Below are positions 10,286 through 59,511 of a stretch of DNA of 64,000 nucleotides, in pieces. The position numbers and the translations under genes are program-made. The stretch's first letter is position 1; every line of letters begins with the position of its first letter. This stretch comes from Dendrobates tinctorius (lineage: Eukaryota). The stretch spans positions 17,298,001-17,362,000 of the forward strand of contig NW_027361771.1 in the NCBI RefSeq assembly GCF_039654945.1, read 5' to 3'. The notes under the pieces were generated by a model. The model was given only the letters and a program-made list of their open reading frames with translations. It was not told the DNA's origin and searched no databases.

Positions 10286-10336
10286 ACCCCCCTCACTGCC
10301 TCACATAATATATATGTATATATATTCACACACACA

Positions 10337-10715: not shown

Positions 10716-10782
10716 TTTTAAATCTAGATGTCTCTGTGGTAATTTCCTGAAGAAGAAGCCATAGGCTTTAAAACAAGTTTAA

Positions 10783-23766: not shown

Positions 23767-23812
23767 TTGCCCCCCCTCCTAGGGCCCCCTCCCTCCTGAG
23801 CCTTCCAATCCA

Positions 23813-24987: not shown

Positions 24988-25227
24988 GGGCTCAGGAGGT
25001 ATAACTTCCAGATCAGGGGGTTAAAGAAATTCAGAGAAATCGGGAGCCGACTCAATCTTTTATCTGGATTGAGTACGCTCCAGCCCACGCTCCGTAAAAC
25101 GGAGGTCAAAACGGGTGGAAATCATAATCAACTCCTCTAGGCTTAAGGGAACCTACCTGGTAGATAAAGCATCTTTGACATGCTCTGCCATCCCTCTACA
25201 GAACACAGGGATGAGTGTTTTATCAGG

Positions 25228-25749: not shown

Positions 25750-25765
25750 TATTAGCCAGACCCTG

Positions 25766-25776
25766 GCACTAGTATA
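25766..25776 (-). promoter_or_regulatory. Self-priming primer-binding site
   Basis: Minus strand TATACTAGTGC just after the 5' LTR is the exact complement of GCACTAGTATA about 25 nt downstream of the LTR TATA box (23510-23520; 35145-35155 with one G:U). Confidence 0.75.
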
Positions 25777-30300: not shown

Positions 30301-30627
30301 ACGGCTCCTTTCAGCAGGAGGCAACGTTTCCGTCAGATGGTGACAGACTACATGTCTTGCCCTGTCAGTGTACGCCCAGATGGCTCTTCCCCCTTCAAGT
30401 TTTGGGTCTCTAAGCTGGATACATGGCCAGAGCTTAGCCAGTATGGAATAGAGGTGCTGGCTTGCCCTGCTGCCAGTGTATTATCGGAACGCGTCTTTAG
30501 TTCCGCAGGTGGTGTACTAACAGAGCGTCGCACGCGACTATCCTCCGATAACGTTGACCGGCTTACTTTTCTGAAAATGAACAAGGCCTGGATCTCGCCA
30601 GAATTTGCCAGTCCTCTTCCAGAATAA
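27349..30627 (+). pseudogene. hAT transposase with BED zinc finger (frameshifts and stops)
   Basis: AWSFF..KCKLC..NMWKHVRTNH (BED), HLTTD, HIPCLAHVLN (CxxH), TRWNS, SVLSERVFS (dimerisation region/E). Confidence 0.9.
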
Positions 30628-30837
30628 ATAATTGGCTGGCAACAGTATCCAGGTCTCCTGTTGTTTTCATGTTCCTACCACCTGAACTGTAATCCCTGGG
30701 CTTCAACACAGCCAGTTGTCGCTCAGAAGTGCCGTCTGCACAGAGAAAAACAGTAGCTCCTGTGTTAGTGGGGTTCAGTAACACCAGCTGCTCCCCTGCT
30801 GTGTGTACAGCAAAGTCTCCTGCTCCCTCCACAATCA

Positions 30838-31258
30838 AACTACTACAGATTTTTAACCGTGCTCCACTTAGGCCTCTGGCTCCACTGTCTCTAGTATTTC
30901 CCCTGGCCTCCAACCCCGCCAGTTGCTGCTCTGAAGTGGCGTCTGCACAATCCACACTTGTTCCTGTGTTACTGGGGCTCAGTCACGTCAGTTGATCCCC
31001 TGGTGTGTGTCCGGCAAGGTCTCCTGCTCTGTCCACATTCCCACTACTAGTAATGGGAATGTGGACAGAGCAGGAGACATTGCCGGACACACATCAGGGG
31101 ATCAACTGACGTGACTGAGCCCCAGTAACACAGGAACAAGTGTGGATTGTGCAGACGCCACTTCAGAGCAGTAACTGGCGGGGTTGGGGGCCAGGGGAAA
31201 TACTAGAGACAGTGGAGCCAGAGGCCATAGTGGAGCATGGTTACAATCAGTAGTAGTC
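30838..31258. repeat. Long loop-less palindrome 1 inside hAT
   Basis: Arms of about 210 bp, centre 31048/31049 (cccactact|agtaatggg). Confidence 0.9.
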
Positions 31259-32214
31259 TACAACCTATATAAAACTTGCTGCAAGTTGGCCTCCGCCTGC
31301 TGCATGATTGATCCTGGGCTTCAACACAGCCATATGTCGCTCGGAAGTGCTGTCCGCACAGAGAAAAACACTAGCTCCTGTGTTAGTGGGGTTTAGTAAT
31401 GCCAGCTGCTCCCCTGCTGTGTGGACAGCAAAGTCTCCTGCTCCCTCCACATTGACACAACATCCGATTTTCTACTTGTTCCAAGTAGGCCTCAGCCTGC
31501 TGAATGAATGATCCTAGGCTTCAACACAGCCAGTTGTCGCTCGGAAGTGCTGTCCGCACAGAGAAAAACACTAGCTCCTGTGTTACTGGGGTTCAGTAAC
31601 GTCAGCTGTTCCCCTGCTGTGTGGACGGCAATGTCTCCTGCTGTCTCCAAAATCACACTACATCTGGCCTCAGCCTGCTCCATGCTTGATCATGGGCTCC
31701 AACAACGCCAGTTGGTGTTCAGAAGTGCCGTCTTCACAGAGAAAAACACACTAGCTCGTGTGTTAGTGAGGTTCAGTAACATCACCTGTTCCCCTGCTGT
31801 GTAGACGGCAATGTCTCCTGCTGCCTCCACATGCAAAAAACATCAGGCCTCAGCCTGCTCCATGCTTGATCCTGGGCTCCAACAACGCCAGTTGGTGTTC
31901 AGAAGTGCCGTCTGCACAGAGAAAAATACATGCTCCAGTGTTAGTGGGGTTCAGAAACACCACGTGCTCCCCTGCTGTGTGGACGACAAAGTCTCCTGCT
32001 GCCTCCAAAATCACACTACATCTTATTTGCTACTTGCTCCAAGTAGGCCTCAGCCTGCTCTATGACTGATCCTGGGCTTCAACACAGCCAGTTGTTGCTT
32101 GGAAGTGCCATCTGCACAGAGAGAAGCACATGCTCCAGTGTTAGTGGGGTTCAGTAATGCCAGCTGCTCCCCTGCTGTGTGGACGGCAAAGTCTCCTGCT
32201 CCCTCCACAATCAA

Positions 32215-32632
32215 ACTAGTACTGATTTTTAACCGTGCTCCACTTAGGTCTTTGGCTCCACTGTCTCTAGTATTTCCCCTGGCCTCCAACCCCGCCAGTT
32301 GCTGCTCTGAAGTGGCGTCTACACAATCCACACTTGTTCCTGTGTTACTGGGGCTCAGTCACGTCAGTTGATCCCCTGATGTGTGTCCGGCAATGTCTCC
32401 TGCTCTGTCCACATTCCCATTACTAGTAGTAGGAATGTGGACAGAGCAGGAGACCTTGCCGGACACACATCAGGGGATCAACTGACGTGACTGAGCCCCA
32501 GTAACACAGGAACAAGTGTGGATTGTGCAGACACCACTTCAGAGCAGTAACTGGTGGGGTTGGAAGCCAGGGGAAATACTAGAGACAGTGGAGCCAGATG
32601 CCATAGTGGAGCACGGTTACAATCAGTAGTAG
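32215..32632. repeat. Long loop-less palindrome 2 inside hAT
   Basis: Arms of about 210 bp, centre 32424/32425, same arm sequence as palindrome 1. Confidence 0.9.
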
Positions 32633-33009
32633 TGTACAACCGATATAAAACTTGCTCCAAGTAGGCCTCAGCCTGCTGCATGATTGACACTGGGCTCCAA
32701 CATCGCCAGTTGCTGCTCAGAAGTGTCTTTGGCACGGGTACTCCCTCCTGCCCAGCCTGGTTCCAGCATGCCTGCTGTTTTCGGGGAGTGTCAACGTCAC
32801 TTTTCCACCAATACATTGTCCTGTCGTGTTGCGGTTGGGTTAGCCGAGTCTATGGTGCCTGCAGTTTAGGTGCTTCCTATGTGGGCTGCGGGTTCTGGTA
32901 ATAAAGGCTGGTTCCGTAGTGCCAATAGGACAAGCACCCCCTGTTGGACTGTGGGTTTCGGTAACTGTGGCCTGCTCGCAGCCATGCAACTTGGTTTATT
33001 ATGGGTACA

Positions 33010-34520
33010 TTCTGCTACCCATCCGGGTTCCAGCACTGTCAGCTGGTTCTCAGCAGTGCCTTTGGCCGAGGTGCCTCCTTCTCGGTATCCGAGTTCCAGC
33101 AACGTCTGCTGGTCCTTGGTAGTGTTTTGTAGCACAGGTACCTCCTGCTTAGTAACCGTGTTCCAGCACCGTTAGCTGGTCCTCGCTAGTTCCATTTGCT
33201 CTTGCAGCTTCTGCTACCCATCCGGGTTCCAGCACCGTCAGCTGGTTCTAGGCAGTGCCTTTGGCCTAGGTGCCTCCTTCTCGGTATCCGAGTTCCAGCA
33301 AGGTCTGCTGGTCCTTGGTAGTGCTTTGTAGCACAGGTACCTCCTGTTTAGCAACTGTGTTCCAGCACCGTCAGCTGGTCCACGGTTGTGCCATTGGCTC
33401 TTGTTCCTTCTGCTGGCCCTCTGGGTTCCAGCACCATCAGCTCGTCCTCGCTAGTTCCATTTGCTCTTGCAGCTTCTGCTACCCATCCAGGTTCCAGCAC
33501 CGTCAGCTGGTTCTCGGCAGTGCCTTTGGTCTAGGTGCCCCCTTCTCGGTATCTGAGTTCCAGCAATGTCTGCTGGTCCTTGGTAGTGCTTTGTAGCACA
33601 GGTACCTCCTGCTTAGTAACCGTGTTCCAGCACTGTCAGCTGGTCCACAGTTTTTCTATTGGCTGTTGTTCCATATGCTGCCCCTCCAGGTTCCAGCACT
33701 GTCAGCTGGTCCTCGCTAGTTCCATTTTCTCTTGATCCTTCTGCTAACCATCCGGGTTCCAGTACCATCAGCTGGTACTCAGCAGTTCCTCAGCCTTCTT
33801 GTACCTTCTGCTACTTTTTCAAATTCGAGCTTGTGGAAATGGTTTTTGGTTCTCAATCTGGATCTCCCTGATGACGACCCTGAAGACGACGACCCTGAAG
33901 ACCACACCGAAGAAGACCAAAAAGATGTCCCTGAAGAAGATGACCAAGAGGACAAAGAGCATGAAGACAACCACCAAGATGCAGAACAACAAGAGACAGA
34001 AGACCAAGAAGCTGAAAAACCAAACGCAGAAGAACATTAAGCATAAGACTAAAAATCAGAGTAAGCATAAGACTAAAAATCAGAGCAAATGATATTATCT
34101 AAATTAAAAGCAGAAGAAGACTAAGCAGTGTATGGGGGTGAGTCCGTTCCTCCTCGTGGTGCCCCTGGAAAATGCCTGCTGCTGCAGGTCAAACTGAACA
34201 CGGACAAATCCTGTTGTAAATCTTTTGTGACAGGCTGAACGGAAGGTGCAATCTTCAAACTTTTATAGATAACAACTACAGGAATGCCTGTCACAAATAA
34301 GAATATGAAGAAGAAGAAGAATAGGAAGAAGATGAAGAAATAGAATATGAAGACGAATAATAGTTGAATAAGAAGAATATGAAGAATGCAAAAAAAAAGG
34401 ATAATAGGAAGAAGGTGAAGAAGAAGAAGATGAATAAGGTGATGAAGAAGTTGATGAAAAAGATGCTGCTGCTGAGGATGATGAAGGAGAAAGTGTGGGA
34501 GAAGTAAAAAAGAAGGTGAA
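33010..34520. repeat. About 60-bp minisatellite followed by GAA-rich low-complexity tract in the hAT 3' region
   Basis: Units with ttccagcaccgtcagctggt; (GAA/GAT/GAC)-rich at 33870-34520. Homologous region lies inverted at 42570-44718. Confidence 0.8.
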
Positions 34521-35288
34521 GAGCATGGAAGTAGTGAAACATACATATCTGACAAAATATAAAAGAGGTTAACATAGTCAATATCTTTGCAACTCCGAAC
34601 TTCCTTAAAAATTTTTTTAATTCCTGCTATTCCATTTGATTGGGCTAAACCTCTATGGCTTTAATGTCTCTTACACCTCCCACAATACATTCTACATTAT
34701 TATTAGTTGTTTTTCATCATGTAGAATTAACCTACAAGGAAAGAAAGTTTTTTTTTTAATTCCGATATTTCTGTTTCATTGACTTGAATGGGACTTCCGG
34801 GATCGGAATCGGTGATACCCGATACTTTTTTGGTGTCGGCCGATCCAATCCGATCCGATATTTTTCAATATCGGGTGGTATCGCTCTACACTACCGGTAA
34901 GTGCTGCTGACTGCAGCGCGGCGGCAGACAGCCGCTGTGCGATAGTGCCGTATGAGATGTGACACCATCGGACGCTAGTGTAGATGTGTGGTGTGCACTG
35001 TGGCCTATGGCTTGCCACTGACTGGCGCTGACTCTTTTTCTAGTTCCCTATCCACATGCGTAATATCAGAGGGAGGGGAATCATAATAAGTCAGTCACCA
35101 GAATCATACATCCATCACCATTCACACATCTAGCAAGGAGAGTCTATACTAGCGCATGGCCGACTGGCCATGAGGGCCTTTTATAGCCGTGCGCTGCCGG
35201 GACCTTCCAGATCTCTGAGATGGACCAATCAGATCTGGAGAAGGACCTAAGCACATGACTCCCGACCTCCAATGGGGGATCGTCTCGT

Positions 35289-37314
35289 AAGTGGAGGCTA
35301 CAGGCAACCAAGTCTGCCCCCGCCCTCTCCCTCCTCTTTTGGCTGTTCGGGGAATCTCTTCCTCAGAGCTACTCCCACCACCTTCCTGTGGCTGACGCCA
35401 TGATGGGTCAAGGACCTCATCATGTCCACTCCCCTCTTCAAGCACCGGCTGGTCCTGGGTTGTCTCGCCAGCACCGTACGCACCAGAAATTGGCAACTGA
35501 GTCTCATCATCATCTGATGCATACTGAGGTGTGCTGACCATAGGCACTGGCCCACCCGCCTCTTCAGATTCAGAGGGACAAAGCAGTTGCGCATAACTGC
35601 ATACTCCCTCTTCTTCACGCTCTAGAATGCTGCTTGGCTGGCCACATCTTTCCAAGCCAACAGATTCTGAGAACAGAAGTAAAGATTGAGATGGCTCCTG
35701 TCCAGGGCTCTCAGACTGCCTGGGCAATTTGGCAGGTGGTGAAGAGACAGATGGTTGCTCTTCAGTGCTCTGGCCTTGGGAGGATGCGGAAGTCATTGAA
35801 GTGGATGCGTTAGCTGCCATCCATCCGACAATGGCTTCAATTTGTTCATCACGCAGCAGTGGGGTACGGCGAGGTCCTACAAAGCTGCGCATGAAGGACT
35901 GTTGCCTGGTAAAAGTGGGGGATGCCGGGTCACTGGTGGCCGCAGCAGATACCGAATCCCCACGTCCTCTCCCTGCTGAATCCCCCCGTCCTCTCCCTGC
36001 TGAAACTCCACGGCCACGACCACGTGCCTTACTCCCTGCCTTCTTCATCTTGGTAGACTGATAAAGATAGGCAGAAAAGTAAAAAAGGGGTGGCTTAGTG
36101 TTCTTATTCCTGAACACCTGCTAACCAGTATAAGAAACACTAATTTGGCTAAGAGTGTGTGTACTACACTTTAATATGATCTAATGTGGCCTAGACAACT
36201 GTAAAGTGGAATGTTTGGTGAACTTTATTTCCTTTTTTTTTTTGGGTGGGGGGAAAGGAAAGGATGTGACCAAAGTTTGAAAGCTATAGTATCACAAACT
36301 TTTTGGAGCGATTACAATGCAGGAAGCTAACCTACAATGCAATTGATGAGGCTCCAAAAAATAGGGTGATACTAGCCTGGCTGGCCCTGAAGGGCACAAG
36401 CCAGCAAAAAGGCTCCTCTATCTAATCCTATATAGTGTTTGCAACCAACCAATGACAATGGATGCAGTTGGAAGCACACTATAGGAGGAAAAATCTGGCT
36501 AAATTTGCTGCAAAAAAAGGACTATGTATGAGGCAGTGACGCACGCTGAGCGGACTACAGCTAGCGGTGGCTGTAGAACACACTGCAACGTGAGGTGCAC
36601 TCACACACAGAGAGACCTATCAGACAGCCAAAAACAGTGCAGAGAAATGGGCTATAGCACTGAAAGGCTGCTGAAAGGCTCCGCTGTCCACTCCTTTAGT
36701 GTTTGCAACCAACGTATATGGATACGTATGGAAGCACACTATACGGGAGAAAAAAAAAGCAGCAATAAAAGAAAAATGTGTATGAGGCAGAGACACACGC
36801 TGGCCGGCCTACAAGCAGACGTGCCTGCAGGACACACTACACAGCGTGGGTCTGCACTCACACAGCCCTTGCAGACAGCTGTGAAAACAGCGCTGCTAGG
36901 GAAAAGCAAGCTACAGTGGTCGTTTATGTAGCCTGGATAAAGCACAATATTGTTTTTAGAATCACTATTTCTAACTGTCCCTCACAGTCTTCAACAGCAG
37001 CCTGTCCCTAACTGAATTCACAGCAGAGGGACCAGAAATGGCGGCTGCAGCGCTTTTTATAGTGCATCATGACATCATTTCAGCAGCCAATCACAGCCAT
37101 GCCAGTAGTTAACATGCCTACATGCCTAACAGGATATGCCCACACTTCTGAGGATCCCCATTGGCTGAATCAAATCGAGCGGGCTCCTAGCATTATGGGA
37201 ACTTCCGATTCCGGTATTCGATATGAAAACAGTATCGGAACTAAGTATCGGAATTCCGATACAGCTAATATCGGCCGATACCCGATACTTGCGGTATCGG
37301 AATGCTCAACACTA
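35289..37314 (-). mobile_element. Left end (2 kb) of a second, related hAT element
   Basis: TIR TAGTGTTGAGC at 37314 on the minus strand. Homologous to 26116-28090 including the transposase N-terminus MKKAGSKARGRG. Truncated at the LTR junction. Confidence 0.9.
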
Positions 37315-38314
37315 CCCACGATGCATAATTATTTGATTGCAACACAGAGAACTTGTTCATCATAGCAACTAGAAGACACTGATAATTGAAATGCATGAAT
37401 ATGCTAAATACTTAAATCATAGATATTTACAACCATTCCCCGTTACTGAAGTGAAGGGAGTGATAATAACAAAAGTGCATGCCGATACCCTCCTCATAAG
37501 CAAACACATAGATTACAGTCAAATTGAGATGTGCGCACTAGTGGACATATTATTTCCCCAGTGAGTCAGATAATAGGGAATAAGACAGTGTAGCTCCTAA
37601 GTTGATCATACGTAATTCATGGTATGCATCACCCGGTCCTATTAAAGGAAAGGCTCCACATGAAAAACAGAGTCAAAAATACCGTTTTATTAACATAATA
37701 TATAAACAAAATAGCGCAAAGACACAGTCCAAAAATGGAGTGGTAAAAAAAAAAAATAAATAAAAAATTAATCACACCAAAGGTGTAAAGCCCTGAGTAG
37801 AATGCCAAGAATGATCTAATCCGAAAGGGGATAAGTAAATGCAGGAAAAGGATCCAGAAATACAATAGAGCTCATTTCAAGCAGACCAAAATCGGCTATG
37901 AAATAGAAATTCTCCACAAGCTCCCCCCATTGGCATCTACGAAATAAATATATACTAGTAACAGAGCACACTAGGGTGAAAAACATAATTGAACAGAATA
38001 CAAGACTCATAAGAGCAATAGAATTACAGAAAAACAACTGTATATGCTCATGACATAAGTCTAGATGACAAACAAATCTGGTCAAGGATAGAGTCCTTTA
38101 GGAGAAGTCCATAGTATAATAGAAGTGCAGATCATGTTGTAAGGCGTCAAGAGACCAACTTTATCCAGGTAACACCAAAAGGAGAGATAGATCTAAATTG
38201 AAGAAACAGAGGTCGAGAGCAAGTCTTCGAATCATGAGGTCCAGAACAGAAGAAGTGTGAGACTTAATACCCAGGATCTACAAAAACAGAAGGAAACTTG
38301 TAAAACAAACCAAA

Positions 38315-40369
38315 TCAAATCTGTTTGTAATATCCAGTAAATAATAAATCTTCATTTAATCCAAGAGGGGAACGACTCCAAAGGTGGAAAATCCACCTGG
38401 ATTCACGTTTCAGCAATTCCAACGAGACGTCCCCCCCTCTAATATTGGTCTGTACAGCTTCCAACCCCAAGACTCTAATACCAGCGCTACACCCATGGTG
38501 TTCACGCAAAAAATGCAAGGCTACCGGGGTTAAGGGTTTACCTTTATCACGATCCATTTTAGCTGTATTAATATTTGAGAGGTGCTGTTGAATCCTCTTT
38601 CTAAGTTCCTGTGTGGTTTGTCCCACATAAATTTTCGGGCATCGACAAACCAATGCATATATCAAGTTTTTGGACCTGCAATTAAAGAAAGTCTTAGAAA
38701 AGACCGAGAAAGTCAAGGTGGGTAAATTGACACCCTCACTACCAACAGTAAGATGACAGATACTACAACCACCACAAGCAAAAGTCCCAACCAGGCGTGC
38801 CCCTCTATTCAAACTGGTAACAGGTCTTTTAAAGTGGCTATGACACAAGGAATCCTTCAGGGATTTTGCTTTTCTGGCAATGAGGGTGGGTTGTGGTGCA
38901 ATATGCGGAGCCAACTTGGGCTCATCAACCAGCATACCCCAGTACTTCATCAAAATGCCTCGCAAGTCATGCCAGTGATTGTTATATGTAGTGACAAGAC
39001 CCAGAGGTCTATCGCACCTGGGCGGTCGTGAACACAGCAAATCAGCCCGATTGGCACCCCTGGTTGATTGAAAAGCCCTAGAAATTACCTTATGTGGGTA
39101 GCCCCTATCTTTAAAGCGTCTTGTCAGGTCCCTGGCTTGTGTCAAAAAATCCTGTTGGGTGGAGCAATTTCTTTTTAAACGGTAAAATTGTCCTTTTGGA
39201 ATCCCGTTCTTCAGATGCTTCGGATGAAAGCTTGAGTAATGCAAAATACTGTTGGTGGAGGACGGTTTACGAAAAAGCATCCTCTTAATAGAAGACCCCT
39301 CCAAGACCAATCTCAAATCCAAAAATTCAACCGCAGATCCTGCAAGATTAGCTGTAAGATGAATGTTTAAATTATTGTTATTGAGTTTGTCAACGAAATT
39401 TTTACATTCTTCCAAAGGCCCTGACCATAATAGGAGGACGTCATCGATATAACGCCACCATTTGAATACATGATCTCTAAACTCGGTAAGTGGGTAAACA
39501 TATGTCAACTCCCACCACCCGAGAAACAGGTTCGCATAGGATGGGGCACAACGTGCCCCCATTGCTGTACCTGAAACCTGCCTAAAAAATGCCCAGTCGA
39601 ATACAAAATAATTTTTGTCCAAAATGAAATACAACAGGTCAATTAAGAATGAATCATGTTGGCGATCACCAGTGGTGTGGTGTTCCAAAAAATAGGCGAT
39701 CGCCTGGATACCCAAATCGTGTCGGATATTGGTGTACAAAGATTCGACATCCAATGAAACTAAAAACTTGTTAGGCGGGATAGTCAAATCGTTTAGCAAA
39801 ACCAAAAGGTGTGAAGTATCCTTCACATGGGAATGGAGGGTAGTGACTAGGGGCTGAAGAAAAAAATCAACATAAATACAAGGTTTCTCAAAAATGCCAC
39901 CAATACCCGACACGATGGGTCGACCAGGAGGATCTATGGTAGATTTGTGCACCTTGGGTAACATATAAAAAGTTGGAACCCTCGGGTGGTGGGTAGTGAG
40001 GAATTCTCTTTCTTTTTTACTGATGACATTGTGGGCCTGGACCATATTTAAGAGTTTATCCAATTTGGAATTAAACACTGAATTGGGATCAGAAGGAAGT
40101 TTCAAATAGAAATGGGCGTTACTCAGTTGTCTCCTAGCCTCCTTAAGGTACTGATCAGCAGGCCAGATGACAATATTGCCGCCTTTATCAGCTTCCCTTA
40201 TAACAAGATCTTTGTTGTCACTAAGATTTCTTAGGGCCTTCCTTTCAGATTTGGTAATATTGTTCTGACAATCAGGTTTAACTCTAAGTTGCTGTATGTC
40301 CCTACATACCGCATCAAAGAAAATCTGGACCACAGGAAATAGCGAGAATTTAGGAGTTGCCAGCAGCAC
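38315..40369 (-). CDS. PLE reverse transcriptase + GIY-YIG endonuclease (uninterrupted, N-terminally truncated)
   Basis: ADKG, LPKVHK, PGRPIVS, LDVESLYTNI, GTAMG, RYIDD, FLD, CGGCSIC linker, LIY..C.C.KIYVGQT..R..H, E..WI..L....P.GLN. Confidence 0.9.
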   Translation of the reverse strand: MLLATPKFSLFPVVQIFFDAVCRDIQQLRVKPDCQNNITKSERKALRNLSDNKDLVIREADKGGNIVIWPADQYLKEARRQLSNAHFYLKLPSDPNSVFNSKLDKLLNMVQAHNVISKKEREFLTTHHPRVPTFYMLPKVHKSTIDPPGRPIVSGIGGIFEKPCIYVDFFLQPLVTTLHSHVKDTSHLLVLLNDLTIPPNKFLVSLDVESLYTNIRHDLGIQAIAYFLEHHTTGDRQHDSFLIDLLYFILDKNYFVFDWAFFRQVSGTAMGARCAPSYANLFLGWWELTYVYPLTEFRDHVFKWWRYIDDVLLLWSGPLEECKNFVDKLNNNNLNIHLTANLAGSAVEFLDLRLVLEGSSIKRMLFRKPSSTNSILHYSSFHPKHLKNGIPKGQFYRLKRNCSTQQDFLTQARDLTRRFKDRGYPHKVISRAFQSTRGANRADLLCSRPPRCDRPLGLVTTYNNHWHDLRGILMKYWGMLVDEPKLAPHIAPQPTLIARKAKSLKDSLCHSHFKRPVTSLNRGARLVGTFACGGCSICHLTVGSEGVNLPTLTFSVFSKTFFNCRSKNLIYALVCRCPKIYVGQTTQELRKRIQQHLSNINTAKMDRDKGKPLTPVALHFLREHHGCSAGIRVLGLEAVQTNIRGGDVSLELLKRESRWIFHLWSRSPLGLNEDLLFTGYYKQI

Positions 40370-41134
40370 TTAAAGAGGTGCCAGCCACACTGACATCCTC
40401 AAAAATCCCCTGTGCCTGAGTGGTCCAAGCTGCCTCCCTTGCTGGTAAGTCCATGATAAGACTAGAAATAAAAGTGTGTGCCAACACTCCTCAAAAGAAC
40501 AGTGGCAAGAAAACCACCAAAACAACAAATATAATAATGAAACCAAGGAGGGCACCACCAAATACAATAGTGGGATCCTCCTGCAGTCAGCAAGAAAATA
40601 GTACCATATACATGTAGAAAAGCTACTGACCAAAAAAGCAGGGATCACCAAAAAGATACGATAATTTTTATTTGACAACCATTGACAACACAAATATAAA
40701 AACAGTTAAAAGTCATAACACATGACAGATCATACACAAGGCTCCTAATAAAGCCAAACAGGCATCCCCCATAGAGCTGAGAAAATAATTGGGCAGTGGA
40801 ACAAAGTGTATAAAAAACAAATAACCTGAGGAGAGCAGTATATATCAGAAGGTAATCAGTAACAGTGATTCAAAATATGCACGGTTCAATACATACCACT
40901 AATAATAACCTGAAAAATATCCATGTATGGACTCAAACAATGTCCAACAAAACTGCTGCAGCAATATGAGTAAAGATGCAGGGACAGGTTAAGGTAGAAC
41001 CAAGGTAAATGAGAACAAGTCGTGCCATATAAGAGATAGACACACAAAACATGCTCTACAGAAAATACACAAATAAAATTGCCCAAAATGTCCTAATAAC
41101 CCTCTTACATATGGGGGAGCTTGTGGAGTGCCCT

Positions 41135-41176
41135 GCCTTACGCGTGTCGCTACCGCAAGGTAGCTTCGTCAGGGGC
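41135..41176 (-). ncRNA. Minimal type I hammerhead ribozyme-like motif (variant core)
   Basis: GCCC-CUGACGA-A-GCUACC-UUGC-GGUAGC-GACA-CGCG-UA-AGGC. Confidence 0.65.
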
Positions 41177-42205
41177 TAGAGAGTGTGTGCAATGAAAGTC
41201 ATATAAATACATACCATAATAAGCTTGATAAGTAGCAGCTGCGAGATTTAGTCTGATCGAACGCAATGTGTGAAGGAGCAAGGACGCGCATCAGGCCAGG
41301 GCCGGATATGTAACCCGTAACTCTCCACTCCTTCCGGGTACATGCAAGAGAGACGTGGTAACTTAAACTGCGCATGTGCCGAAGGCATGGTGGTTATAGC
41401 AACTAGAGGACGCTGATGTCGGCGATTATACAACAAGAATTAATAGTCATAATAATCAAGGAACGCACATATCGGCGATACATAACGGCTTGAAAAATTT
41501 GTATCTCAATTAAGCACTTTATATGAGGGCGCGAAAGCGCATATCAAATCATGGCCGGATGTATGACCCACTCCTTACAAGTAAATACAAAAGATATGGT
41601 GGCTCATACTGCACATGTCCAAAGACATGATAATTATAGTAACCAAGAGACACCAATACCGGCAAATGTGCACAGATAGTTAGTGATCATGGTGATCAAA
41701 AAAGTCGGCAAGGATCTAAAGCAAATACTTAGATTATTTAATATTTAAGACAGTTCCCCATAGCTACAGTGCAGGGGGAAATACCAATAATGCCGCATAT
41801 TAATACCCTACATATAAAACGCACGCATAGATTGTAATAACTGCATTAGTTCTAATCATATTAATAAATAAAAGATGAGGGATGAGTAACACGCCCTAAG
41901 ATAGAGACAAAGCTATAGACCGCAAAACATAATTGCTTAATTACGGCGAGAGAGGCTTGCTCGTCATAATAGCCAGAGAACGCTGGTAACTAGAATGAGT
42001 GACCCTGCTGAGTACTCAGATCATAAATATATAAGAAAACTCGCCGTTACTTCAATACAGGTAAGGATAGCAGCAGTGGTGCATGCCGATGTCAAGCACA
42101 GAAACGCATACATAGATTACAATTGCCACATTAGTTCTAAACATCTTATTTGGTAGCGGCTAGATAACGAGCCCTAAAAGTAGGGTCAAGGCTAAGACCC
42201 ACGAT

Positions 42206-44718
42206 TAGTGTTGAGCGATACCGTTCGATACCCAAAAATATCGTATCTGATGGTATCGTCCGATACGAAAAAAATATCGGGTATCGCCGATTCCGATACC
42301 GAAAGTCCCATTCAAGTCAATGGGACTTCTGGTATCGGAATTAAAAAAAGGCCTTTATTTCCTTGTTGGCTAATTCTACATAATTGAAAACAAATAAGAA
42401 TCATGTAGAATGTATTGTGGGAGGTGGAGGAGACATTAAAAGCATAGTGGTTTATTCAAATCACATGGCATAGCATTAATTCCAATTTCTTTTTTCAAGA
42501 CGTTCGGAGTTAAAAAGATATTGACTATGTTAACTTTTTTATATTTAGTCAGATATGTATGTTTCGCAACTTCCATGCTCTTCACCTTCTTTTGTACTTC
42601 TCCCACACTTTCTCCTTCATGATCCGCAGCAGTAGCATTTTTTTCATCAACTTTTTCTTCACCTTATTCATCTTCTTCTTCTTCACCTTCTTCCCATTAA
42701 TTTTTTTTTTCCATTCTTCATATTCTTCTTATTCAGCTATTATTAATTTTCATATGCTATTTCGTCATCTTCTTCCTATTCTTCTTTTTCTTCATTTTCT
42801 TATGGTGACAGGCATTCCTGTAGTACTTATCTATAAAAGTTATAAGATTACACCTTACGTTCTGCCTGTCACAAAAGATTTACAACAGGATTTGTCCGCG
42901 TTCAGTTTGGCCTGCAGTAGCAGGCATTTTCCAGGGGCACCACGAGGAGGAACGGACTCACCCCCATTTACTGCTTAGTCTTCTTCTGCTTATAATTTTG
43001 ATTTCTTCTATGCTGATTTTTTGTCTTATGCTTAATGTTCTTCTGCTTTCTGTTCTTCTGCTTTTGCTTCTTCTGCTTCTTGTTCTTCTGTCTTTTGTTC
43101 TGTATCTTGTTGGTTGTCTTCATGTTCTTTGTCCTCTTGGTCTTATTATTTAGGGTCATATTTCTGGTCTTCTTTGGTGTGGTCTTCAGGGTCGTCATCA
43201 TCAGGGTCGTCGTCATGGAGATCAATTAGGATTACCAAAGACAATTTCAAAAAGCTTGATCTTGGAAATGTAGCAGAAGGTACAAGAAGGCTGAGAAACT
43301 GGCGAGAACCAGCAGACAGTGCTGGCACCCGGATGGGTAGCAGAAGGAACAAGAGCCAATGGCACTACCGAGGACCAACTGACGGTGCTGGACCACGGTT
43401 ACTAAGCAGAAGGTACCTGTGCTAAAAAGCACTACCAAGGACCAGCTGACGGTGCTGGACCTCGGATACCGAGATGGAGGCACCTAGACCAAAGGCTGTG
43501 GCGAGAACCAGCAGACAGTGCTGGCACCCGGATGGGTAGCAGAAGGAACAAGAGCCAATGGCACTACCGAGGACCAACTGACGGTGCTGGACCACGGTTA
43601 CTAAGCAGAAGGTACCTGTGCTAAAAAGCACTACCAAGGACCAGCTGACGGTGCTGGACCTCGGATACCGAGATGGAGGCACCTAGGCCAAAGGCTCTGG
43701 CGAGAACCAGCAGACAGTGCTGGAACCCGGGTGGGTAGCAGAAGGTACCCATTGAAAGCAAAGTAGCCAGGCCGCAAGCCGGCCGCAGTTACCGAAACCC
43801 ACAGTCCTACAGGGGGTCCATGTCCCATTGGCACTACGGATCCAGCCTTCAGTGCCAGTTCCCGCAGCCCACATAGGAGTCACCTAAACTGCAGGCACCG
43901 TAGAGTCGGCTAACCCGGCCGCAAGACGACAGGACAACGGATTGGTGGCATAGTGACCTTGACACTACCCGGAAACAGCAGGCGTGCTGGAACCAGGCTG
44001 GGCAACAGGGAGTCCCCGTGCAAAAGACACTGCCGAGAACCAGCTGGCGGTGCTGGAACCCAGATGGGTAGCAAAAGCTATAAGAGCCAATGGCACTACC
44101 GAGGAACAGCTGACGGTGCTGGACCACGGTTACTAGGCAGGAGGTACCTGTGCTAGAAAGCACTACCAAGGACCAGCTGACGGTGCTGGACCTCGGATAC
44201 CGAGATGGAGGCACCTAGGCCAAAGGCTCTGGCGAGAACCAGCAGACAGTGCTGGAACCCGGGTGGGTAGCAAAAGGTACCCATTGAAAGCAAAGTAGCC
44301 AGGCCGCAAGCCGGCCGCAGTTACCGAAACCCACAGTCCTACAGGGGGTCCATGTCCCATTGGCACTACGGATCCAGCCTTCAGTGCCAGTTCCCGCAGC
44401 CCACATAGGAGTCACCTAAACTGCAGGCACCGTAGAGTCGGCTAACCCGGCCGCAAGACGACAGGACAATGGATTGGTGGCATAGTGACCTTGACACTAC
44501 CCGGAAACAGCAGGCGTGCTGGAACCAGGCTGGGCAACAGGGAGTCCCCGTGCCAAAGACACTGCCGAGAACCAGCTGACGGTGCTGGAACCCAGATGGG
44601 TAGCAAAAGCTACAAGAGCCAATGGCACTACCGAGGAACAGCTGACGGTGCTGGACCACGGTTACTAGGCAGGAGGTACCTGTGCTAGAAAGCACTACCA
44701 AGGACCAGCTGACGGTGC
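42206..44718 (-). mobile_element. Right end (2.5 kb) of a related hAT element
   Basis: TIR TAGTGTTGAGC at 42206. Inverted homologue of about 32700-34893, with a 532-bp higher-order duplication. Truncated by the PLE at 44719. Confidence 0.9.
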
Positions 44719-45939
44719 TGTGTTTGCTTATGAGGAGGGTATCGGCATGCACTTTTGTTATTATCACTCCCTTCACTTCAGTAACGGGGAATGGTTGTAA
44801 ATATCTATGATTTAAGTATTTAGCATGGTCATGCATTTCAATTATCAGTGTCTTCTAGTTGCTATGATGAACAAGTTCTCTGTGTTGCAATCAAATAATT
44901 ATGCATCGTGGGTCTTAGCCTTGACCCTACTTTTAGGGCTCGTTATCTAGCCGCTACCAAATAAGATGTTTAGAACTAATGTGGCAATTGTAATCTATGT
45001 ATGCGTTTCTGTGCTTGACATCGGCATGCACCACTGCTGCTATCCTTACCTGTATTGAAGTAACGGCGAGTTTTCTTATATATTTATGATCTGAGTACTC
45101 AGCAGGGTCACTCATTCTAGTTACCAGCGTTCTCTGGCTATTATGATGAGCAAGCCTCTCTTGCCGTAATTAAGCAATTATGTTTTGCGGTCTATAGCTT
45201 TGTCTCTATCTTAGGGCGCGTTACTCATCCCTCATCTTTTATTTATTAATATGATTAGAACTAATTCAGTTATTACAATCTATGCGTGCGTTTTATATGT
45301 AGGGTATTAATATGCGGCATTATTGGTATTTCCCCCTGCACTGTAGCTATGGGGAACTGTCTTAAATATTAAATATTCAGGATCTAAGTATTTGCTTTAG
45401 ATCCTTGCCGACTTTTTTGATCACCATGATCACTAACTATCTGTGCACATTTGCCAGTATTGGTGTCTCTTGGTTACTATAATTATCATGTCTTTGGACA
45501 TGTGCAGTATGAGCCACCGTATCTTTTGTATTTACTTGTAAGGAGTGGGTCATACATCCGGCCCTGATTTGATATGCGCTTTCGCGCCCTCATATAAAGT
45601 GCTTAATTGAGATACAAGTTTTTCAAGCCGTTATGTATCGCCGATATGTGCGTTCCTTGATTATTATGACTATTAATTCTTGTTGTATAATCGCCGACAT
45701 CAGCGTCCTCTAGTTGCTATAACCACCATGCCTTCGGCACATGCGCAGTTTAAGTTACCACGTCTCTCTTGCATGTACCCGGAAGGAGTGGAGAGTTACG
45801 GGTTACATATCCGGCCCTGGCCTGATGCGCGTCCTTGCGCCTTCACACATTGCGTTCGATCAGACTAAATCTCGCAGCTGCTACTTATCAAGCTTATTAT
45901 GGTATGTATTTATATGACTTTCATTGCACACACTCTCTA

Positions 45940-45981
45940 GCCCCTGACGAAGCTACCTTGCGGTAGCAACACGCGTCGGGC
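45940..45981 (+). ncRNA. Hammerhead ribozyme-like motif in 5' pLTR (G12 mutated)
   Basis: GCCC-CUGACGA-A-GCUACC-UUGC-GGUAGC-AACA-CGCG-UC-GGGC. Confidence 0.55.
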
Positions 45982-46661
45982 AGGGCACTCCACAAGCTCC
46001 CCCATATGTAAGAGGGTTATTAGGACATTTTGGGCAATTTTATTTGTGTATTTTCTGTAGAGCATGTTTTGTGTGTCTATCTCTTATATGGCACGACTTG
46101 TTCTCATTTACCTTGGTTCTACCTTAACCTGTCCCTGCATCTTTACTCATATTGCTGCAGCAGTTTTGTTGGACATTGTTTGAGTCCATACATGGATATT
46201 TTTCAGGTTATTATTAGTGGTATGTATTGAACCGTGCATATTTTGAATCACTGTTACTGATTACCTTCTGATATATACTGCTCTCCTCAGGTTATTTGTT
46301 TTTTATACACTTTGTTCCACTGCCCAATTATTTTCTCAGCTCTATTGGGGATGCCTGTTTGGCTTTATTAGGAGCCTTGTGTATGATCAGTCATGTGTTA
46401 TGACTTTTAACTGTTTTTATATTTGTGTTGTCAATGGTTGTCAAATAAAAATTATCGTATCTTTTTGGTGATCCCTGCTTTTTTGGTCAGTAGCTTTTCT
46501 ACATGTATATGGTACTATTTTCTTGCTGACTGCAGGAGGATCCCACTAATGTATTTGGTGGTGCCCTCCTTGGTTTCATTATTATATTTGTTGTTTTGGT
46601 GGTTTTCTTGCCACTGTTCTTTTGAGGAGTGTTGGCACACTCTTTTATTTCTAGTCTTATT

Positions 46662-47426
46662 ATGGACTTAGCAGCAAGGGAGGCAGCTTGGACCACTCAG
46701 GTACAGGGGATTTTTGAGGATGTCAGTGTGGCTGGCACCTCTTTAAGTGCTGCTGGGAAGGACTCAGATTTCGATGTTATTTCTAGAGAACTTGTCAGTT
46801 TACATAAAACTCTCACTAAGACATGGTGGAACATCAAAAGTCTTGATGAGTACAAAAGGTTTGGTCTTGTCCCAAGGGGACTTAGGGTGCAGATTTTCCC
46901 GGCTTGGGAGGTTGATTGTTCCTTTCGTAAGAAATGGGAAGATGGCCTTTTTTCATGTTCAACTATTATCATGAATTTACTCATCGAACATGATCGCACC
47001 CTACTAGCTGATTTAAAAGATAAAATTAGAATATGTGAAACTAAGCTACAAAAATTCGACATGAAAATCTTGGTCGAACCTTTTTTGGGCTGTCTTAAGA
47101 CCACAATTGACCTTTATGAGAACGAGATTATTGGGGGTAAGAAGAATAAATTTAAACGGGATCAGATGGACTTTAACAATGGAAAGGCTTATAAATGGGT
47201 CCATAGGGGCAATAAGAGACGTCCTGCCCCGGTCAACAACACTAACAGGGTTAATCTCTCGGTGAATGAGTCCCATTCCAGTGATTTTTTATCATCGGAA
47301 CAGAGCGACCTAGAAGGCGCCACAGGAGGGGTAGACGTGGCAGGAGAAGCCACAAGGAGGACCAAGAGACATCGCCAATGGTCTCCCAAATTTCGGAGAG
47401 ACACCAGACAGAACAGGAGGCATTAG
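46662..47426 (+). CDS. PLE ORF1 (254 aa from ATG)
   Basis: Intact ORF with WWN..SL..Y....LVPRGLRV motif (resembling PLE N-terminal domains), helical/coiled region and basic tail. Confidence 0.75.
   Translation: MDLAAREAAWTTQVQGIFEDVSVAGTSLSAAGKDSDFDVISRELVSLHKTLTKTWWNIKSLDEYKRFGLVPRGLRVQIFPAWEVDCSFRKKWEDGLFSCSTIIMNLLIEHDRTLLADLKDKIRICETKLQKFDMKILVEPFLGCLKTTIDLYENEIIGGKKNKFKRDQMDFNNGKAYKWVHRGNKRRPAPVNNTNRVNLSVNESHSSDFLSSEQSDLEGATGGVDVAGEATRRTKRHRQWSPKFRRDTRQNRRH
47285..47291 (+). promoter_or_regulatory. Candidate -1 ribosomal frameshift heptamer T TTT TTA
   Basis: In ORF1 frame (GAT TTT TTA). The -1 frame opens right after TGA at 47282-47284 and continues into ORF2. Confidence 0.6.
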
Positions 47427-49818
47427 CCCCCTGTGTGGCAACTTTGTCTAAATCTTCTGATACGGCACACCAACCTGAGGGTAAGTTGTCAATTATTAAT
47501 CTATCTAACTATAATCTGTCACAAATGGAGTACTCTATTTTACAACGTGGACTATCTTTTTGTCCTATGAATACTCTAGACAAATTTTTGTTTGTTAAAG
47601 ATTTATATTTATTTTGCAGACAACTCACCTTCAAATTACTATATCATCAACCCACGATTGTGGACACCTTACCGATGGAGGATAGACAAACATTTAGAGA
47701 TCTACTTTCTCTTTTGGAAGAAAATGATAACCCTGCTACTAGAAACCGTTTCACAGGACGATTACCCTCCCAGGCAACTCCTAAATTCTCGCTATTTCCT
47801 GTGGTCCAGATTTTCTTTGATGCGGTATGTAGGGACATACAGCAACTTAGAGTTAAACCTGATTGTCAGAACAATATTACCAAATCTGAAAGGAAGGCCC
47901 TAAGAAATCTTAGTGACAACAAAGATCTTGTGATAAGGGAAGCTGATAAAGGCGGCAATATTGTCATCTGGCCTGCTGATCAGTACCTTAAGGAGGCTAG
48001 GAGACAACTGAGTAACGCCCATTTCTATTTGAAACTTCCTTCTGATCCCAATTCAGTGTTTAATTCCAAATTGGATAAACTCTTAAATATGGCCCAGGCC
48101 CACAATGTCATCAGTAAAAAAGAAAGAGAATTCCTCACTACCCACCACCCGAGGGTTCCAACTTTTTATATGTTACCCAAGGTGCACAAATCTACCATAG
48201 ATCCTCCGGGTCGACCCATCGTGTCGGGTATTGGTGGCATTTTTGAGAAACCTTGTATTTATGTTGATTTTTTTCTTCAGCCCCTAGTCACTACCCTCCA
48301 TTCCCATGTGAAGGATACTTCACACCTTTTGGTTTTGCTAAACGATTTGACTATCCCGCTAACACGTTTTTAGTTTCATTGGATGTCGAATCTTTGTACA
48401 CGAATATCCGACATGATTTGGGTATCCAGGCGATCGCCTATTTTTTGGAACACCGCACCACTGGTGATCGCCAACATGATTCATTCTTAATTGACCTGTT
48501 GTATTTCATTTTGGACAAAAATTATTTTGTATTCGACCGGGCATTTTTTAGGCAGGTTTCAGGTACAGCAATGGGGGCACGTTGTGCCCCATCCTATGCG
48601 AACCTGTTTCTCGGGTGGTGGGAGTTGACATATGTTTACCCACTTACCGAGTTTAGAGATCATGTATTCAAATGGTGGCGTTATATCGATGACGTCCTCC
48701 TATTATGGTCAGGGCCTTTGGAACAATGTAAAAATTTCGTTGACAAACTCAATAACAATAATTTAAACATTCATCTTACAGCTAATCTTGCAGGATCTGC
48801 GGTTGAATTTTTGGATTTGAGATTGGTCTTGGAGGGGTCTTCTATTAAGACGACGCTTTTTCGTAAACCGACCTCCACCAACAGTATTTTGCACTACTCA
48901 AGCTTTCATCCGAAGCATCTGAAGAACGGGATTCCCAAAGGACAATTTTACCGTTTAAAAAGAAATTGCTCCACCCAACAGGATTTTTTGACACAAGCCA
49001 GGGACCTGACAAGACGCTTTAAAGATAGGGGCTACCCACATAAGGTAATTTCTAGGGCTTTTCAATCAGCCAGGGGTGCCAATCGGGCTGATTTGCTGTG
49101 TTCACGACCGCCCAGGTGCGATAGACCTCTGGGTCTTGTCACTACATATAACAATCACTGGCATGACTTGCGAGGCATTTTGATGTAGTACTGGGGTATG
49201 CTGGTTGATGAGCCCAAGTTGGCTCCGCATATTGCACCACAACCCACCCTCATTGCCAGAAAAGCAAAATCCCTGAAGGATTCCTTGTGTCATAGCCACT
49301 TTAAAAGACCTGTTACTAGTTTGAATAGAGGGGCACGCCTGGTTGGGACTTTTGCTTGTGGTGGTTGTAGTATCTGTCATCTTACTGTTGGTAGTGAGGG
49401 TGTCAATTTACCCACCTTGACTTTCTCGGTCTTTTCTAAGACTTTCTTTAATTGCAGGTCCAAAAACTTGATATATGCATTGGTTTGTCGATGCCCGAAA
49501 ATTTATGTGGGACAAACCACACAGGAACTTAGAAAGAGGATTCAACAACACCTCTCAAATATTAATACAGCTAAAACGGATCGTGATAAAGGTAAACCCT
49601 TAACCCCGGTAGCCTTGCATTTTTTGCGTGAACACCATGGGTGTAGCGCTGGTATTAGAGTCTTGGGGTTGGAAGCTGTACAGACCAATATTAGAGGGGG
49701 GGACATCTCGTTGGAATTGCTGAAACGTGAATCCAGGTGGATTTTCCACCTTCGGAGTCGTTCCCCTCTTGGATTAAATGAAGATTTTTTATTTACTGGA
49801 TATTACAAACAGATTTGA
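47285..49818 (+). pseudogene. PLE ORF2 RT + GIY-YIG (1-bp deletion near 48359, TAG at 49186)
   Basis: IINLS..L..GLSFCP, DKG and RT motifs, GIY-YIG. Lesions are evident by comparison with the minus copy. Confidence 0.9.
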
Positions 49819-51830: not shown

Positions 51831-51872
51831 GCCCCTGACGAATCTACCTTGCGGTAGCGACACGCGTCGGGC
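51831..51872 (+). ncRNA. Hammerhead ribozyme-like motif in 3' pLTR
   Basis: GCCC-CUGACGA-A-UCUACC-UUGC-GGUAGC-GACA-CGCG-UC-GGGC. Confidence 0.6.
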
Positions 51873-52475
51873 AGGACACTCCACAAGCTCCCCCATATGT
51901 AAGAGGGTTATTAGGACATTTTGGGCAATTTTATTTGTGTATTTTCTGTAGAGCATGTTTTGTGTGTCTATCTCTTATATGGCACGACTTGTTCTCATTT
52001 ACCTTGGTTCTACCTTAACCTGTCCCTGCATCTTTACTCATATTGCTGCAGCAGTTTTGTTGGACATTGTTTGAGTCCATACATGGATATTTTTCAGGTT
52101 ATTATTAGTGGTATGTATTGAACCGTGCATATTTTGAATCACTGTTACTGATTACCTTCTGATATATACTGATCTCCTCAGGTTATTTGTTTTTTATACA
52201 CTTTGTTCCACTGCCCAATTATTTTCTCAGCTCTATGGGGGATGCCTGTTTGGCTTTATTAGGAGCCTTGTGTATGATCTGTCATGTGTTATGACTTTTA
52301 ACTGTTTTTATATTTGTGTTGTCAATGGTTGTCAAATAAAAATTATCGTATCTTTTTGGTGATCCCTGCTTTTTTGGTCAGTAGCTTTTCTACATGTATA
52401 TGGTACTATTTTCTTGCTGACTGCAGGAGGATCCCACTATTGTATTTGGTGGTGCCCTCCTTGGTTTCATTATTA

Positions 52476-59025: not shown

Positions 59026-59511
<486 letters not shown>

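Follow-up and report, generated by a model that had tools for sequence, protein, structure and literature searches.

How a retroelement came to lie between two transposon ends that both point at it is the question raised by a locus of Dendrobates tinctorius. In the window (the whole stretch analysed, 64,000 nucleotides), a single unit of a Penelope-like element (PLE) is bracketed by two parts of a hAT transposon, with one copy of an 8-bp target duplication at either border. A preliminary description had read this inside-out arrangement as a hAT element that struck a circular PLE monomer, the composite circle then having integrated after a break within the hAT. The anatomy underlying that proposal is real, and the features of the locus are as follows.

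22923..35288, minus strand: old gypsy-like LTR element (self-BLAST, alignment, Pfam)
26115..34893, plus strand: hAT copy 1, complete, 8779 bp (termini, target duplication, empty site)
35289..37314, minus strand: hAT copy 2, left part (identity to copy 1, terminus sequence)
37315..37322, minus strand: target-site copy CCCACGAT (ATCGTGGG on the PLE sense strand), adjoining the hAT left terminus
37323..42197, minus strand: single, circularly permuted PLE unit (98.7% identity to 44913-50806; Pfam)
42198..42205, minus strand: second target-site copy CCCACGAT, adjoining the hAT right terminus
42206..44718, minus strand: hAT copy 2, right part (identity to copy 1, tandem repeats)
44719..52475, plus strand: PLE plus-strand copy, 1.3 units (self-BLAST, Pfam, empty sites)

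Tc1-like and other repeats occur in the flanks, left of 22923 and right of 52475.

The hAT ends and their target

The left end of hAT copy 2 stops at 37314 and its right end begins at 42206, both abutting CCCACGAT, and the minus-strand order given in the preliminary description (hAT right end, one PLE unit, hAT left end) holds to the base. Both ends carry the perfect 11-bp inverted terminus TAGTGTTGAGC, which ends at 37314 in reverse-complemented form and starts at 42206, so placed that both termini point into the PLE unit. On the plus strand the 8-mer CCCACGAT is found at 37315, 42198 and 47651. Its complement ATCGTGGG lies at 44905 and 50798, where the plus-strand PLE copy has two intact, unfilled sites (44905-44912 and 50798-50805), one in each pLTR as had been noted. 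Read on the minus strand, one filled junction runs ...TTATGC ATCGTGGG and then the hAT left end, and the other runs from the hAT right end through ATCGTGGG into TCTTAGCC...; both sites of the plus-strand copy read ...TTATGC ATCGTGGG TCTTAGCC..., a perfect match of empty and filled site. These junctions support placement of the element at ATCGTGGG in this PLE by a hAT transposase.

The identification as hAT is likewise sound, with 8-bp target duplications at copy 1 (CCGGTAAG) and copy 2 (ATCGTGGG) and short terminal inverted repeats that are exact over 11 bp in copy 2 and near-identical in copy 1. The CCGGTAAG that flanks copy 1 has its unfilled counterpart intact in the other gypsy LTR, at about 23258. 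The transposase of copy 1 is split into several ORFs, one of which (29662-30627) contains the dimerisation domain Dimer_Tnp_hAT (Pfam PF05699, E = 6e-14), a region that copy 2 lacks entirely. The left part of copy 2 matches the reverse complement of 26115-28089 at 86% identity (11.65% substitutions); it starts internally at the equivalent of 28089 and carries the 5' part of the transposase ORF. The right part, about 82% identical to the reverse complement of ~32690-34893, extends into a subterminal region of 66/199/532-bp tandem repeats and is cut off at 44718. In the numbering of the complete copy, positions 1-1975 and ~6576-8779 are kept and the ~4.6 kb between them are absent, with no DNA or translated match for this interior in the window outside copy 1. 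The retained parts are therefore not adjacent halves of one element, and a composite circle broken just once inside the hAT does not account for them, although the parental hAT of copy 2 may have been shorter than copy 1. On whether the two ends belong together, of the positions listed, only 2 in one end and 1 in the other carry a letter that is not the majority one in the high-copy family, which fits an assignment of both to one young subfamily.

A read check across 36900-42600 returned short contigs of low coverage that derive from high-copy relatives. They contain the empty site, which is the commoner form of this PLE (joint 42196 to 37314), as well as further hAT insertions; among the pieces listed, none crosses a filled junction. 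They also contain dimers of the form hAT end, 8 bp, hAT end, the 8 bp differing from ATCGTGGG; such dimers show the inside-out pattern of the present locus without any captured segment, and a free PLE circle is not required for them.

Such dimers bear on a reading in which two hATs of one subfamily entered the same 8-mer, in the same orientation, in both repeats of one PLE arm and afterwards lost sequence from their outer sides. At hAT targets the pattern is usually nTnnnnAn, which ATCGTGGG only half-matches; moreover, the site is empty in the common PLE form, both sites of the plus-strand copy are unfilled, and two truncations are needed as well. What speaks for two insertions is the huge abundance of hAT termini, with word depths of 2-6 x 10^5 vs 15-500 for the PLE, and the attribution of dimers of this kind to double insertion at one target, the hAT element hobo included (PMC5932611). 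On balance this reading is quite improbable.

An assembly artefact is improbable too; in that case the 98.7%-identical PLE sequence would have caused two genuine PLE::hAT junction loci from different places to be joined, or a longer array to be collapsed. Tandem and inverted PLE structures are a known source of assembly trouble (PMC8557442), and among the low-coverage short contigs listed none spans the filled junctions or the single unit. Against this, the window is gap-free (N count 0), and its four junctions join unlike sequences, which collapse cannot produce. Even with a misjoin within the unit, the presence of two hAT fragments at the same 8-mer would need an explanation, and the ~1% divergence and a 1017-bp deletion should be enough for long accurate reads to separate the copies.

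The PLE arms and their surroundings

The minus-strand unit (37315-42197, 4883 bp) is exactly one permuted unit. As the preliminary description had it, the permutation is circular: the sequence is colinear at 98.7% with 44905-50806 of the plus-strand copy, across the tail-to-head junction at 46584/46585, save for a 1017-bp deletion at 40360/40361 relative to 46757-47772. The borders of this deletion have GG in common and offer no GT-AG in any register, and a spliced retrocopy was rejected as its source. One ORF of 684 aa (38315-40369) encodes a reverse transcriptase (RVT_1, residues 197-336) followed by a GIY-YIG endonuclease (568-618; Pfam), the arrangement of EN+ PLEs with a C-terminal GIY-YIG. 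Frog relatives of the protein, at no more than 58% identity, have the same domains; the protein search retrieved only unnamed amphibian proteins, with no match above 58%, and recovered no further copy from this genome.

The plus-strand copy has pLTRs at 44719-46584 and 50612-52475, a unit of 5893 bp and broken ORFs. By self-BLAST it forms a partial tandem (pLTR) with an adjacent inverted copy (37315-42205); the two arms stand head-to-head, the inverted one adjoining the upstream pLTR, and ~2.5 kb of hAT separates them. No hammerhead ribozyme family of Rfam matched at E <= 0.1 in 22000-54000 or at E <= 10 in 44700-46700, and hammerhead support for a circular RNA was set aside accordingly; the pLTR may carry a divergent motif.

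Substitutions amount to 0.88% between the minus-strand unit and the body of the plus-strand copy, and to 1.02% between the two pLTRs of the latter. A three-way comparison of the unit with both pLTRs over 1680 bp gives a star tree, with 7, 8 and 9 private changes. The arms are thus of equal age, and this, with the star tree and the head-to-head layout, suggests that the minus-strand unit was probably made in place along with the plus-strand copy.

The gypsy-like element is far older by the same measure. Its LTRs (22925-23653, and 25780-26116 plus 34893-35288) are 6.5% apart in substitutions, and gag and protease ORFs occupy 23813-25749 (Pfam gag, aspartyl protease, zf-CCHC). hAT copy 1 splits the right-hand LTR, which then runs up to the left outer joint of the composite (35288/35289, gypsy LTR to hAT), where there is only AG/AAG microhomology. 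At the right outer joint (44718/44719, hAT to plus-strand PLE) there is only TG. With LTRs 6.5% apart, vs ~1% for the PLE that the hAT entered, and 2-3 bp of microhomology, integration of the gypsy into the hAT was rejected, and the left joint is seen as a later break joint.

Several other candidates were discarded. Nested insertions into two full hAT copies predicted hAT remainders left of 22923 and right of 52475, and the window outside copy 1 has no DNA or translated match to the hAT interior. A single inversion fails on paper, as both hAT parts point the same way and the right end precedes the left. Internal capture by a hAT (Pack-type) fails because the termini point inward and leave the PLE outside the element. 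For a single alternative transposition, by reversed ends or between sister chromatids, the published outcomes split the target halves between products (PMC3744419).

Routes to an inside-out target duplication

A target duplication split over both ends of one unit implies a circular or tandem topology at some stage, and that much of the earlier claim of a circular target stands. The obligatory free PLE monomer circle does not, since the 8-mer occurs twice, as a direct repeat, in a linear plus-strand copy and is not single-copy per element. With ATCGTGGG doubled in an ordinary insertion, a linear chromosomal origin of hAT-unit-hAT becomes possible; unequal exchange, replication template switching, template jumping by reverse transcriptase and a second insertion can all yield it. 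A target duplication found inside out does not prove that the target was circular, and free circular PLE DNA is unnecessary for the layout.

The reading favoured here, with rather less than even confidence, is that a hAT inserted in the normal way into the inverted arm on the chromosome, and that repeats then drove a duplication or permutation. We infer the order of events and the recombination mechanism as follows. The block 35289-52475 would have begun as a single ordinary complex PLE insertion beside or into the old gypsy LTR, in which the inverted arm (the present minus-strand unit) stood head-to-head with a direct arm carrying the pLTR, and each arm would have held ATCGTGGG twice, in direct repeat one unit apart. 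A young member of the very abundant hAT family would then have inserted at one inverted-arm site by cut-and-paste, with 8-bp duplication. The inside-out layout would have come later through the PLE direct repeats, either by unequal exchange to hAT-unit-hAT or by replication template switching in which one jump went by way of the repeat. The outer hAT portions would have been lost at two further joints with microhomology (AAG at 35288/35289, TG at 44718/44719).

In favour of this sequence of insertion and reshuffling are the perfect relation of empty to filled sites and the two target copies of each normal insertion; the star tree, the near-equal divergence of arms and pLTRs, the older gypsy and the microhomology joints; and the non-adjacent hAT parts, with their interior missing from the window and ends that fit a young subfamily. 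It costs several steps after the PLE insertion: a hAT would have had to insert, a single jump or exchange by homology to follow, and two joints to form without homology. One complex replication event with three switches is the alternative. The parts that would have been lost (the tail end of the inverted arm, the hAT middle and a second left or right end) have no remnant in the window, and the non-overlap of the hAT parts is equally expected from one hAT opened on a circle. Nor does the arrangement before the rearrangement turn up among the low-coverage short contigs or at another locus.

The same polarity and joints can be read at the level of RNA. Here the inverted arm would have been reverse-transcribed, during one PLE insertion, from a read-through PLE::hAT RNA; at its source locus, a linear PLE would have carried the hAT in its 3' pLTR, at ATCGTGGG. 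The LTR 3' end would have primed at microhomology inside the hAT left part, and synthesis would have run through the PLE body, jumped by homology from 5' pLTR to 3' pLTR sequence (either the jump that usually forms tandems or passage round a circular RNA), and continued past the 8-mer into the hAT right end before stopping (5' truncation) and meeting the cDNA of the plus-strand arm at 44718/44719. The "circle" would then be terminal redundancy of the RNA. Two events suffice, and the polarity is that of twin priming: hAT and PLE share the same sense, plus-strand 35289-44718, taken in the 5' to 3' direction, corresponds to antisense cDNA made on a PLE-sense RNA, AAG lies at the priming joint and TG where the arms meet, and less than one turn of hAT plus unit is retained. 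PLEs are found as complex tandem and inverted insertions with frequent 5' truncation (PMC8557442), and a PLE reverse transcriptase initiates internally on its own RNA, the transcripts being described as multi-unit (PMC11167929). Yet two distinct RNAs would have to have served as templates for the arms, of which only one carried the hAT and the 1017-bp deletion; even so, the minus-strand unit has no surplus of private changes. Unlike canonical arms, the inverted arm has no PLE 3' tail at its outer end. The donor locus is not known, no Rfam hammerhead in the pLTR backs a circular RNA, and the alignments reveal no intron loss in the hAT parts. An RNA-level origin is judged unlikely.

Somewhat less likely again is a DNA circle of one PLE unit with a hAT, opened inside the hAT and end-joined between the gypsy LTR and the plus-strand copy. 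The circle could have come from pLTR-pLTR recombination, with the hAT already inside or arriving afterwards, or from free PLE cDNA. Exactly one unit with a split target duplication, non-overlapping hAT parts as predicted for one hAT cut open, and microhomology of the end-joining type at both outer joints agree with it. However, a single clean break is insufficient with ~4.6 kb of hAT interior gone, and a re-integrated circle is unlikely to have landed 2.5 kb from its coeval sibling, just where a canonical inverted copy would lie. Since RNA copying in EN+ PLEs is understood to take place at the target (PMC11167929), no free cDNA circles would be expected, and a full-text literature search on PLEs and extrachromosomal circles found no relevant report. 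The version first proposed, a hAT hitting a free PLE monomer circle, has only a very slim chance.

Across both levels, it is possible but doubtful that the composite is the fossil of a circular intermediate with one PLE unit and a hAT, whether as an extrachromosomal DNA circle that re-integrated or as a PLE::hAT RNA, circular or with terminal redundancy, of which the PLE reverse transcriptase copied less than one turn. If true, this would give Penelope-like elements their first structural trace of such an intermediate, DNA or RNA, and would bear directly on their transposition cycle, in which the mechanism that forms tandem and inverted structures is still undefined; the nested transposon, with its split target duplication, marks the exact point where one unit closed on itself. 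Repeat-driven exchange or template switching, which is more likely, would make the locus a tidy but ordinary case of nested-repeat reshuffling in a large amphibian genome.

Comparison with known systems

Complex PLE insertions were reportedly described by Evgen'ev and Arkhipova. In canonical form, a partial tandem (pLTR) is accompanied by an inverted, 5'-truncated copy at its 5' end (Craig et al. 2021, PMC8557442). The present locus agrees in its plus-strand copy of 1.3 units with a 1866-bp pLTR, its head-to-head minus-strand copy of equal age, an ORF with reverse transcriptase and C-terminal GIY-YIG, and a tail-to-head junction kept in both arms. It departs from that form in an inverted arm that is permuted, bounded by an internal 8-mer instead of the PLE tail and bracketed by hAT fragments, with 2.5 kb of hAT between the arms.

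Double insertion gives rise to tandem transposon dimers whose junction contains the target duplication, those of hobo (hAT) among them (McGurk and Barbash 2018, PMC5932611). As in those dimers, right and left hAT ends face each other across an 8-bp target, and bare 8-bp versions are present in the reads of this genome; here, in contrast, a whole 4.9-kb retroelement unit stands between the target copies and both hAT copies are truncated.

Unequal recombination between the terminal repeats of retroelements, which forms solo and tandem LTRs, likewise uses direct repeats one unit apart, homologous exchange giving tandem gain or a one-unit circle. The repeats at this locus differ in being pLTRs of a PLE, and a DNA transposon is nested in the segment exchanged.

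Alternative transposition of hAT elements in maize also involves a segment between transposon pieces that has a left end on one side and a right end on the other, facing each other (Zhang et al. 2013, PMC3744419). The published junctions each carry one target half, on different chromatids, and no published outcome puts both halves around one segment; the present layout could not be derived from a single such event. Reversed-ends transposition of facing hAT ends would free the intervening segment as a circle (PMC3744419). The present layout is itself a reversed-ends substrate, and a hAT transposase at work there should set the PLE unit free in circular form.

Layout of the composite and its junctions

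Self-comparison of the window, junction read-outs and Pfam scans provided the map below, in which all coordinates are on the + strand. The window is free of N runs. By their defining features (junction read-outs, Pfam), the elements concerned are a hAT transposon and an EN+ Penelope-like element (PLE), the latter with partial-tandem terminal repeats (pLTRs).

Features of the block
22923-35288, minus strand: gypsy-like element, old
23813-25749: gypsy gag and protease ORFs, within the gypsy-like element
22925-23653, and 25780-26116 plus 34893-35288: gypsy LTRs
26115-34893: hAT copy 1, complete, 8779 bp, interrupting the right-hand gypsy LTR; target duplication CCGGTAAG; ORF with a hAT dimerisation domain
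35289-37314: hAT copy 2, left part, reverse-complemented; 86% identity to 26115-28089
37315-37322: 8-mer CCCACGAT, first copy
37323-42197, minus strand: single PLE unit
42198-42205: 8-mer CCCACGAT, second copy
42206-44718: hAT copy 2, right part; about 82% identity to ~32690-34893 of hAT copy 1
44719-52475, plus strand: PLE + copy, 1.3 units; pLTRs 44719-46584 and 50612-52475

What the preliminary description had said of the sequence itself proved correct throughout in the self-comparison and junction read-outs. The 11-bp hAT termini TAGTGTTGAGC on both sides point at the PLE unit, and the filled junctions, where the 8-mer abuts a hAT terminus, match base for base the two empty sites in the pLTRs of the + copy (44905 and 50798; …TTATGC ATCGTGGG TCTTAGCC…). 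The sequence between the 8-mers is one permuted PLE unit, colinear with 44905-50806 of the + copy, and this colinearity runs across the tail-to-head junction at 46584/46585. The structure is a hAT insertion made by transposase in the PLE of this locus, and the halves of its target duplication now flank precisely one permuted unit. The sole large difference between this minus unit (37315-42205) and the + copy is a 1017-bp deletion in the former (40360-40361 against 46757-47772), with GG at both borders and GT-AG in no register, which from its sequence looks like a microhomology deletion or a slip of the reverse transcriptase (RT) on its template, and not a spliced intron.

Elsewhere in the window, a Tc1/mariner-type element (17756-19369) that looks very young ends in inverted repeats of 219 bp, 100% complementary to each other, and contains a 250-aa ORF in which HTH_Tnp_Tc3_2 and DDE_3 domains are present. 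Another element (55843-60276) is bounded by inverted repeats totalling ~215 bp, in two matched segments (105 and 119 nt, 84-92%), and contains, on the minus strand, a fragment of a DDE_3 ORF (59023-59502), along with a MADF-like ORF (56841-57179). A large degenerate tandem-repeat field lies at 7794-13650, with many self-matches of 73-86% and a strong C-over-G skew around 8-10 kb.

The hAT family and the evidence from reads

On the complete copy, the counterparts of the two pieces of hAT copy 2 are positions 1-1975 and about 6576-8779. The intervening 4.6 kb, which takes in most of the transposase gene, has no match elsewhere in the window in DNA or translated searches, and because it is absent, the single break inside the hAT by which the proposed circle was thought to have opened is insufficient. 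Either a large loss at the break or a shorter parental hAT derivative could account for the missing interior. The two hAT copies differ by 12-14%. Copy 1 also contains a block of 180-200-bp tandem repeats (30694-32725) with two palindromes of ~420 bp (30839-31257, 32215-32633), which gave sub-threshold matches to miRNA-precursor models (MIR477: 39 bits, where the gathering score is 65) and are probably mere hairpin repeats.

The only public runs that cover the region consist of short contigs; three of these runs are from one sample, probably of low coverage, and a fourth is from another study, and the stretch compared was 36900-42600. In the three runs of one sample, word depth reached 2-6 x 10^5 at the hAT ends, as against 15-500 across the PLE. 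The high depth covers the terminal few hundred bases (36900-37314 and 42206-42600), and the left end was met beside many other flanking sequences; the termini therefore belong to a hugely amplified family, probably MITE-like. Whether both ends of copy 2 come from one subfamily had been proposed as a check, and their few departures from the family's majority letter (two listed positions on the left, one on the right) are compatible with a single young subfamily. In three runs the PLE was present in its empty-site form, joining 42196 to 37314, at a depth of 18-29, and the filled junctions were bridged by none of the listed pieces in these short contigs of probably low coverage. That the arrangement is a misassembly is considered improbable.

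Contigs from the three runs of one sample also show the left and right ends of a hAT just eight other letters apart (e.g., GTCATGAG). Such contigs represent hAT dimers arranged head to tail, the junction containing a target copy, and have the same inside-out pattern as the locus with nothing captured. McGurk and Barbash explained dimers of this class, of hobo and P among others, by two insertions at a single target site (PMC5932611). At the present locus, a second hAT insertion at the sister site would give the same layout, and two independent insertions of this kind are judged less probable again than misassembly.

Relative ages and the origin of the inside-out layout

The minus unit has 1680 bp in common with both pLTRs; over this stretch it shows 7 private changes, the 5' pLTR 8 and the 3' pLTR 9, which on these counts is a star tree. 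Substitutions amount to 0.88% between the minus unit and the + copy (body) and to 1.02% between the pLTRs of the + copy; the minus unit is therefore coeval with the + copy and derives from essentially the same template. Its RT-endonuclease ORF (38315-40369) is an unbroken 684 aa despite the permutation; that of the coeval + copy (47378-49818) is in three ORFs owing to a frameshift and a stop. The minus unit stands head-to-head with the + copy, next to its upstream pLTR, and one would not expect a randomly re-integrated free circle to lie 2.5 kb from a coeval sibling in exactly that orientation. A DNA circle followed by re-integration is thus unlikely.

The gypsy LTRs are 6.5% apart, so the gypsy element is far older than the PLE and the hAT insertion, and the joint at 35288/35289 is thus a later break joint; its reading as a gypsy integration was ruled out on that divergence. 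Only AG/AAG is common to LTR and hAT there. At 44718/44719, TG is common to the hAT repeat and the PLE, and the right part of hAT copy 2 ends within its own subterminal tandem repeats (44718).

The split target duplication had been taken to imply a circle. Topology does demand a circular or tandem stage, but a free circle is unnecessary, because an ordinary PLE insertion, as seen in the + copy, already holds the target 8-mer twice, in direct orientation and one unit apart. A homology-guided jump between PLE repeats, whether by unequal sister exchange, replication template switching or an RT template jump, would turn "unit-hAT-unit" into "hAT-unit-hAT". The arrangement is real and unusual, with the tandem or circular stage supplied by the PLE's own repeat structure, and the specific proposal that a hAT struck a free monomer circle is the least probable of the readings weighed here. 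Attempts to obtain the layout from one alternative transposition, one inversion or internal capture by the hAT did not succeed.

Our preference, a tentative one held at somewhat less than an even chance, is that the hAT entered the chromosomal inverted arm of the PLE by normal insertion and that the inside-out layout then formed at the locus itself by way of the direct repeats of the PLE, the outer hAT parts being lost through two microhomology joints. This could have come about by an unequal exchange and two deletions, or by a single replication event with three template switches: from the LTR to the hAT interior (AAG), back over the repeat (homology), and from the hAT repeat to the + copy (TG).

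An RNA-level origin is rather unlikely, if less so than a re-integrated circle. Here the inverted arm would be an LTR-primed reverse transcript of a read-through RNA from a PLE with the hAT in its 3' pLTR, with the usual homology jump between pLTR sequences. The polarity, the fact that hAT and PLE run in the same sense, the microhomologies at the joints and the "less than one turn" content all fit, and few events are needed. Internal initiation by PLE RTs has been reported, on transcripts described as multi-unit (PMC11167929). Against this origin, the arms would have had to be copied from different templates, yet private changes are not in excess in the minus unit, and there is no known donor. 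A hammerhead is expected in PLE pLTRs, yet covariance models gave no Rfam family match to one in 22000-54000, nor in 44700-46700 even at E <= 10.

Comparison with known systems

The arrangement is a marker of moderate interest for the reshuffling of PLE arrays, and its interest would become high only if a circular DNA or RNA intermediate were indicated by long reads together with a census of the genome. In the alternative transposition of maize Ac, the "reversed ends" substrate has the configuration of the present locus, and the segment between the ends is freed as a circle (PMC3744419). By this analogy, the locus could thus be the source of a PLE circle and not the record of one.
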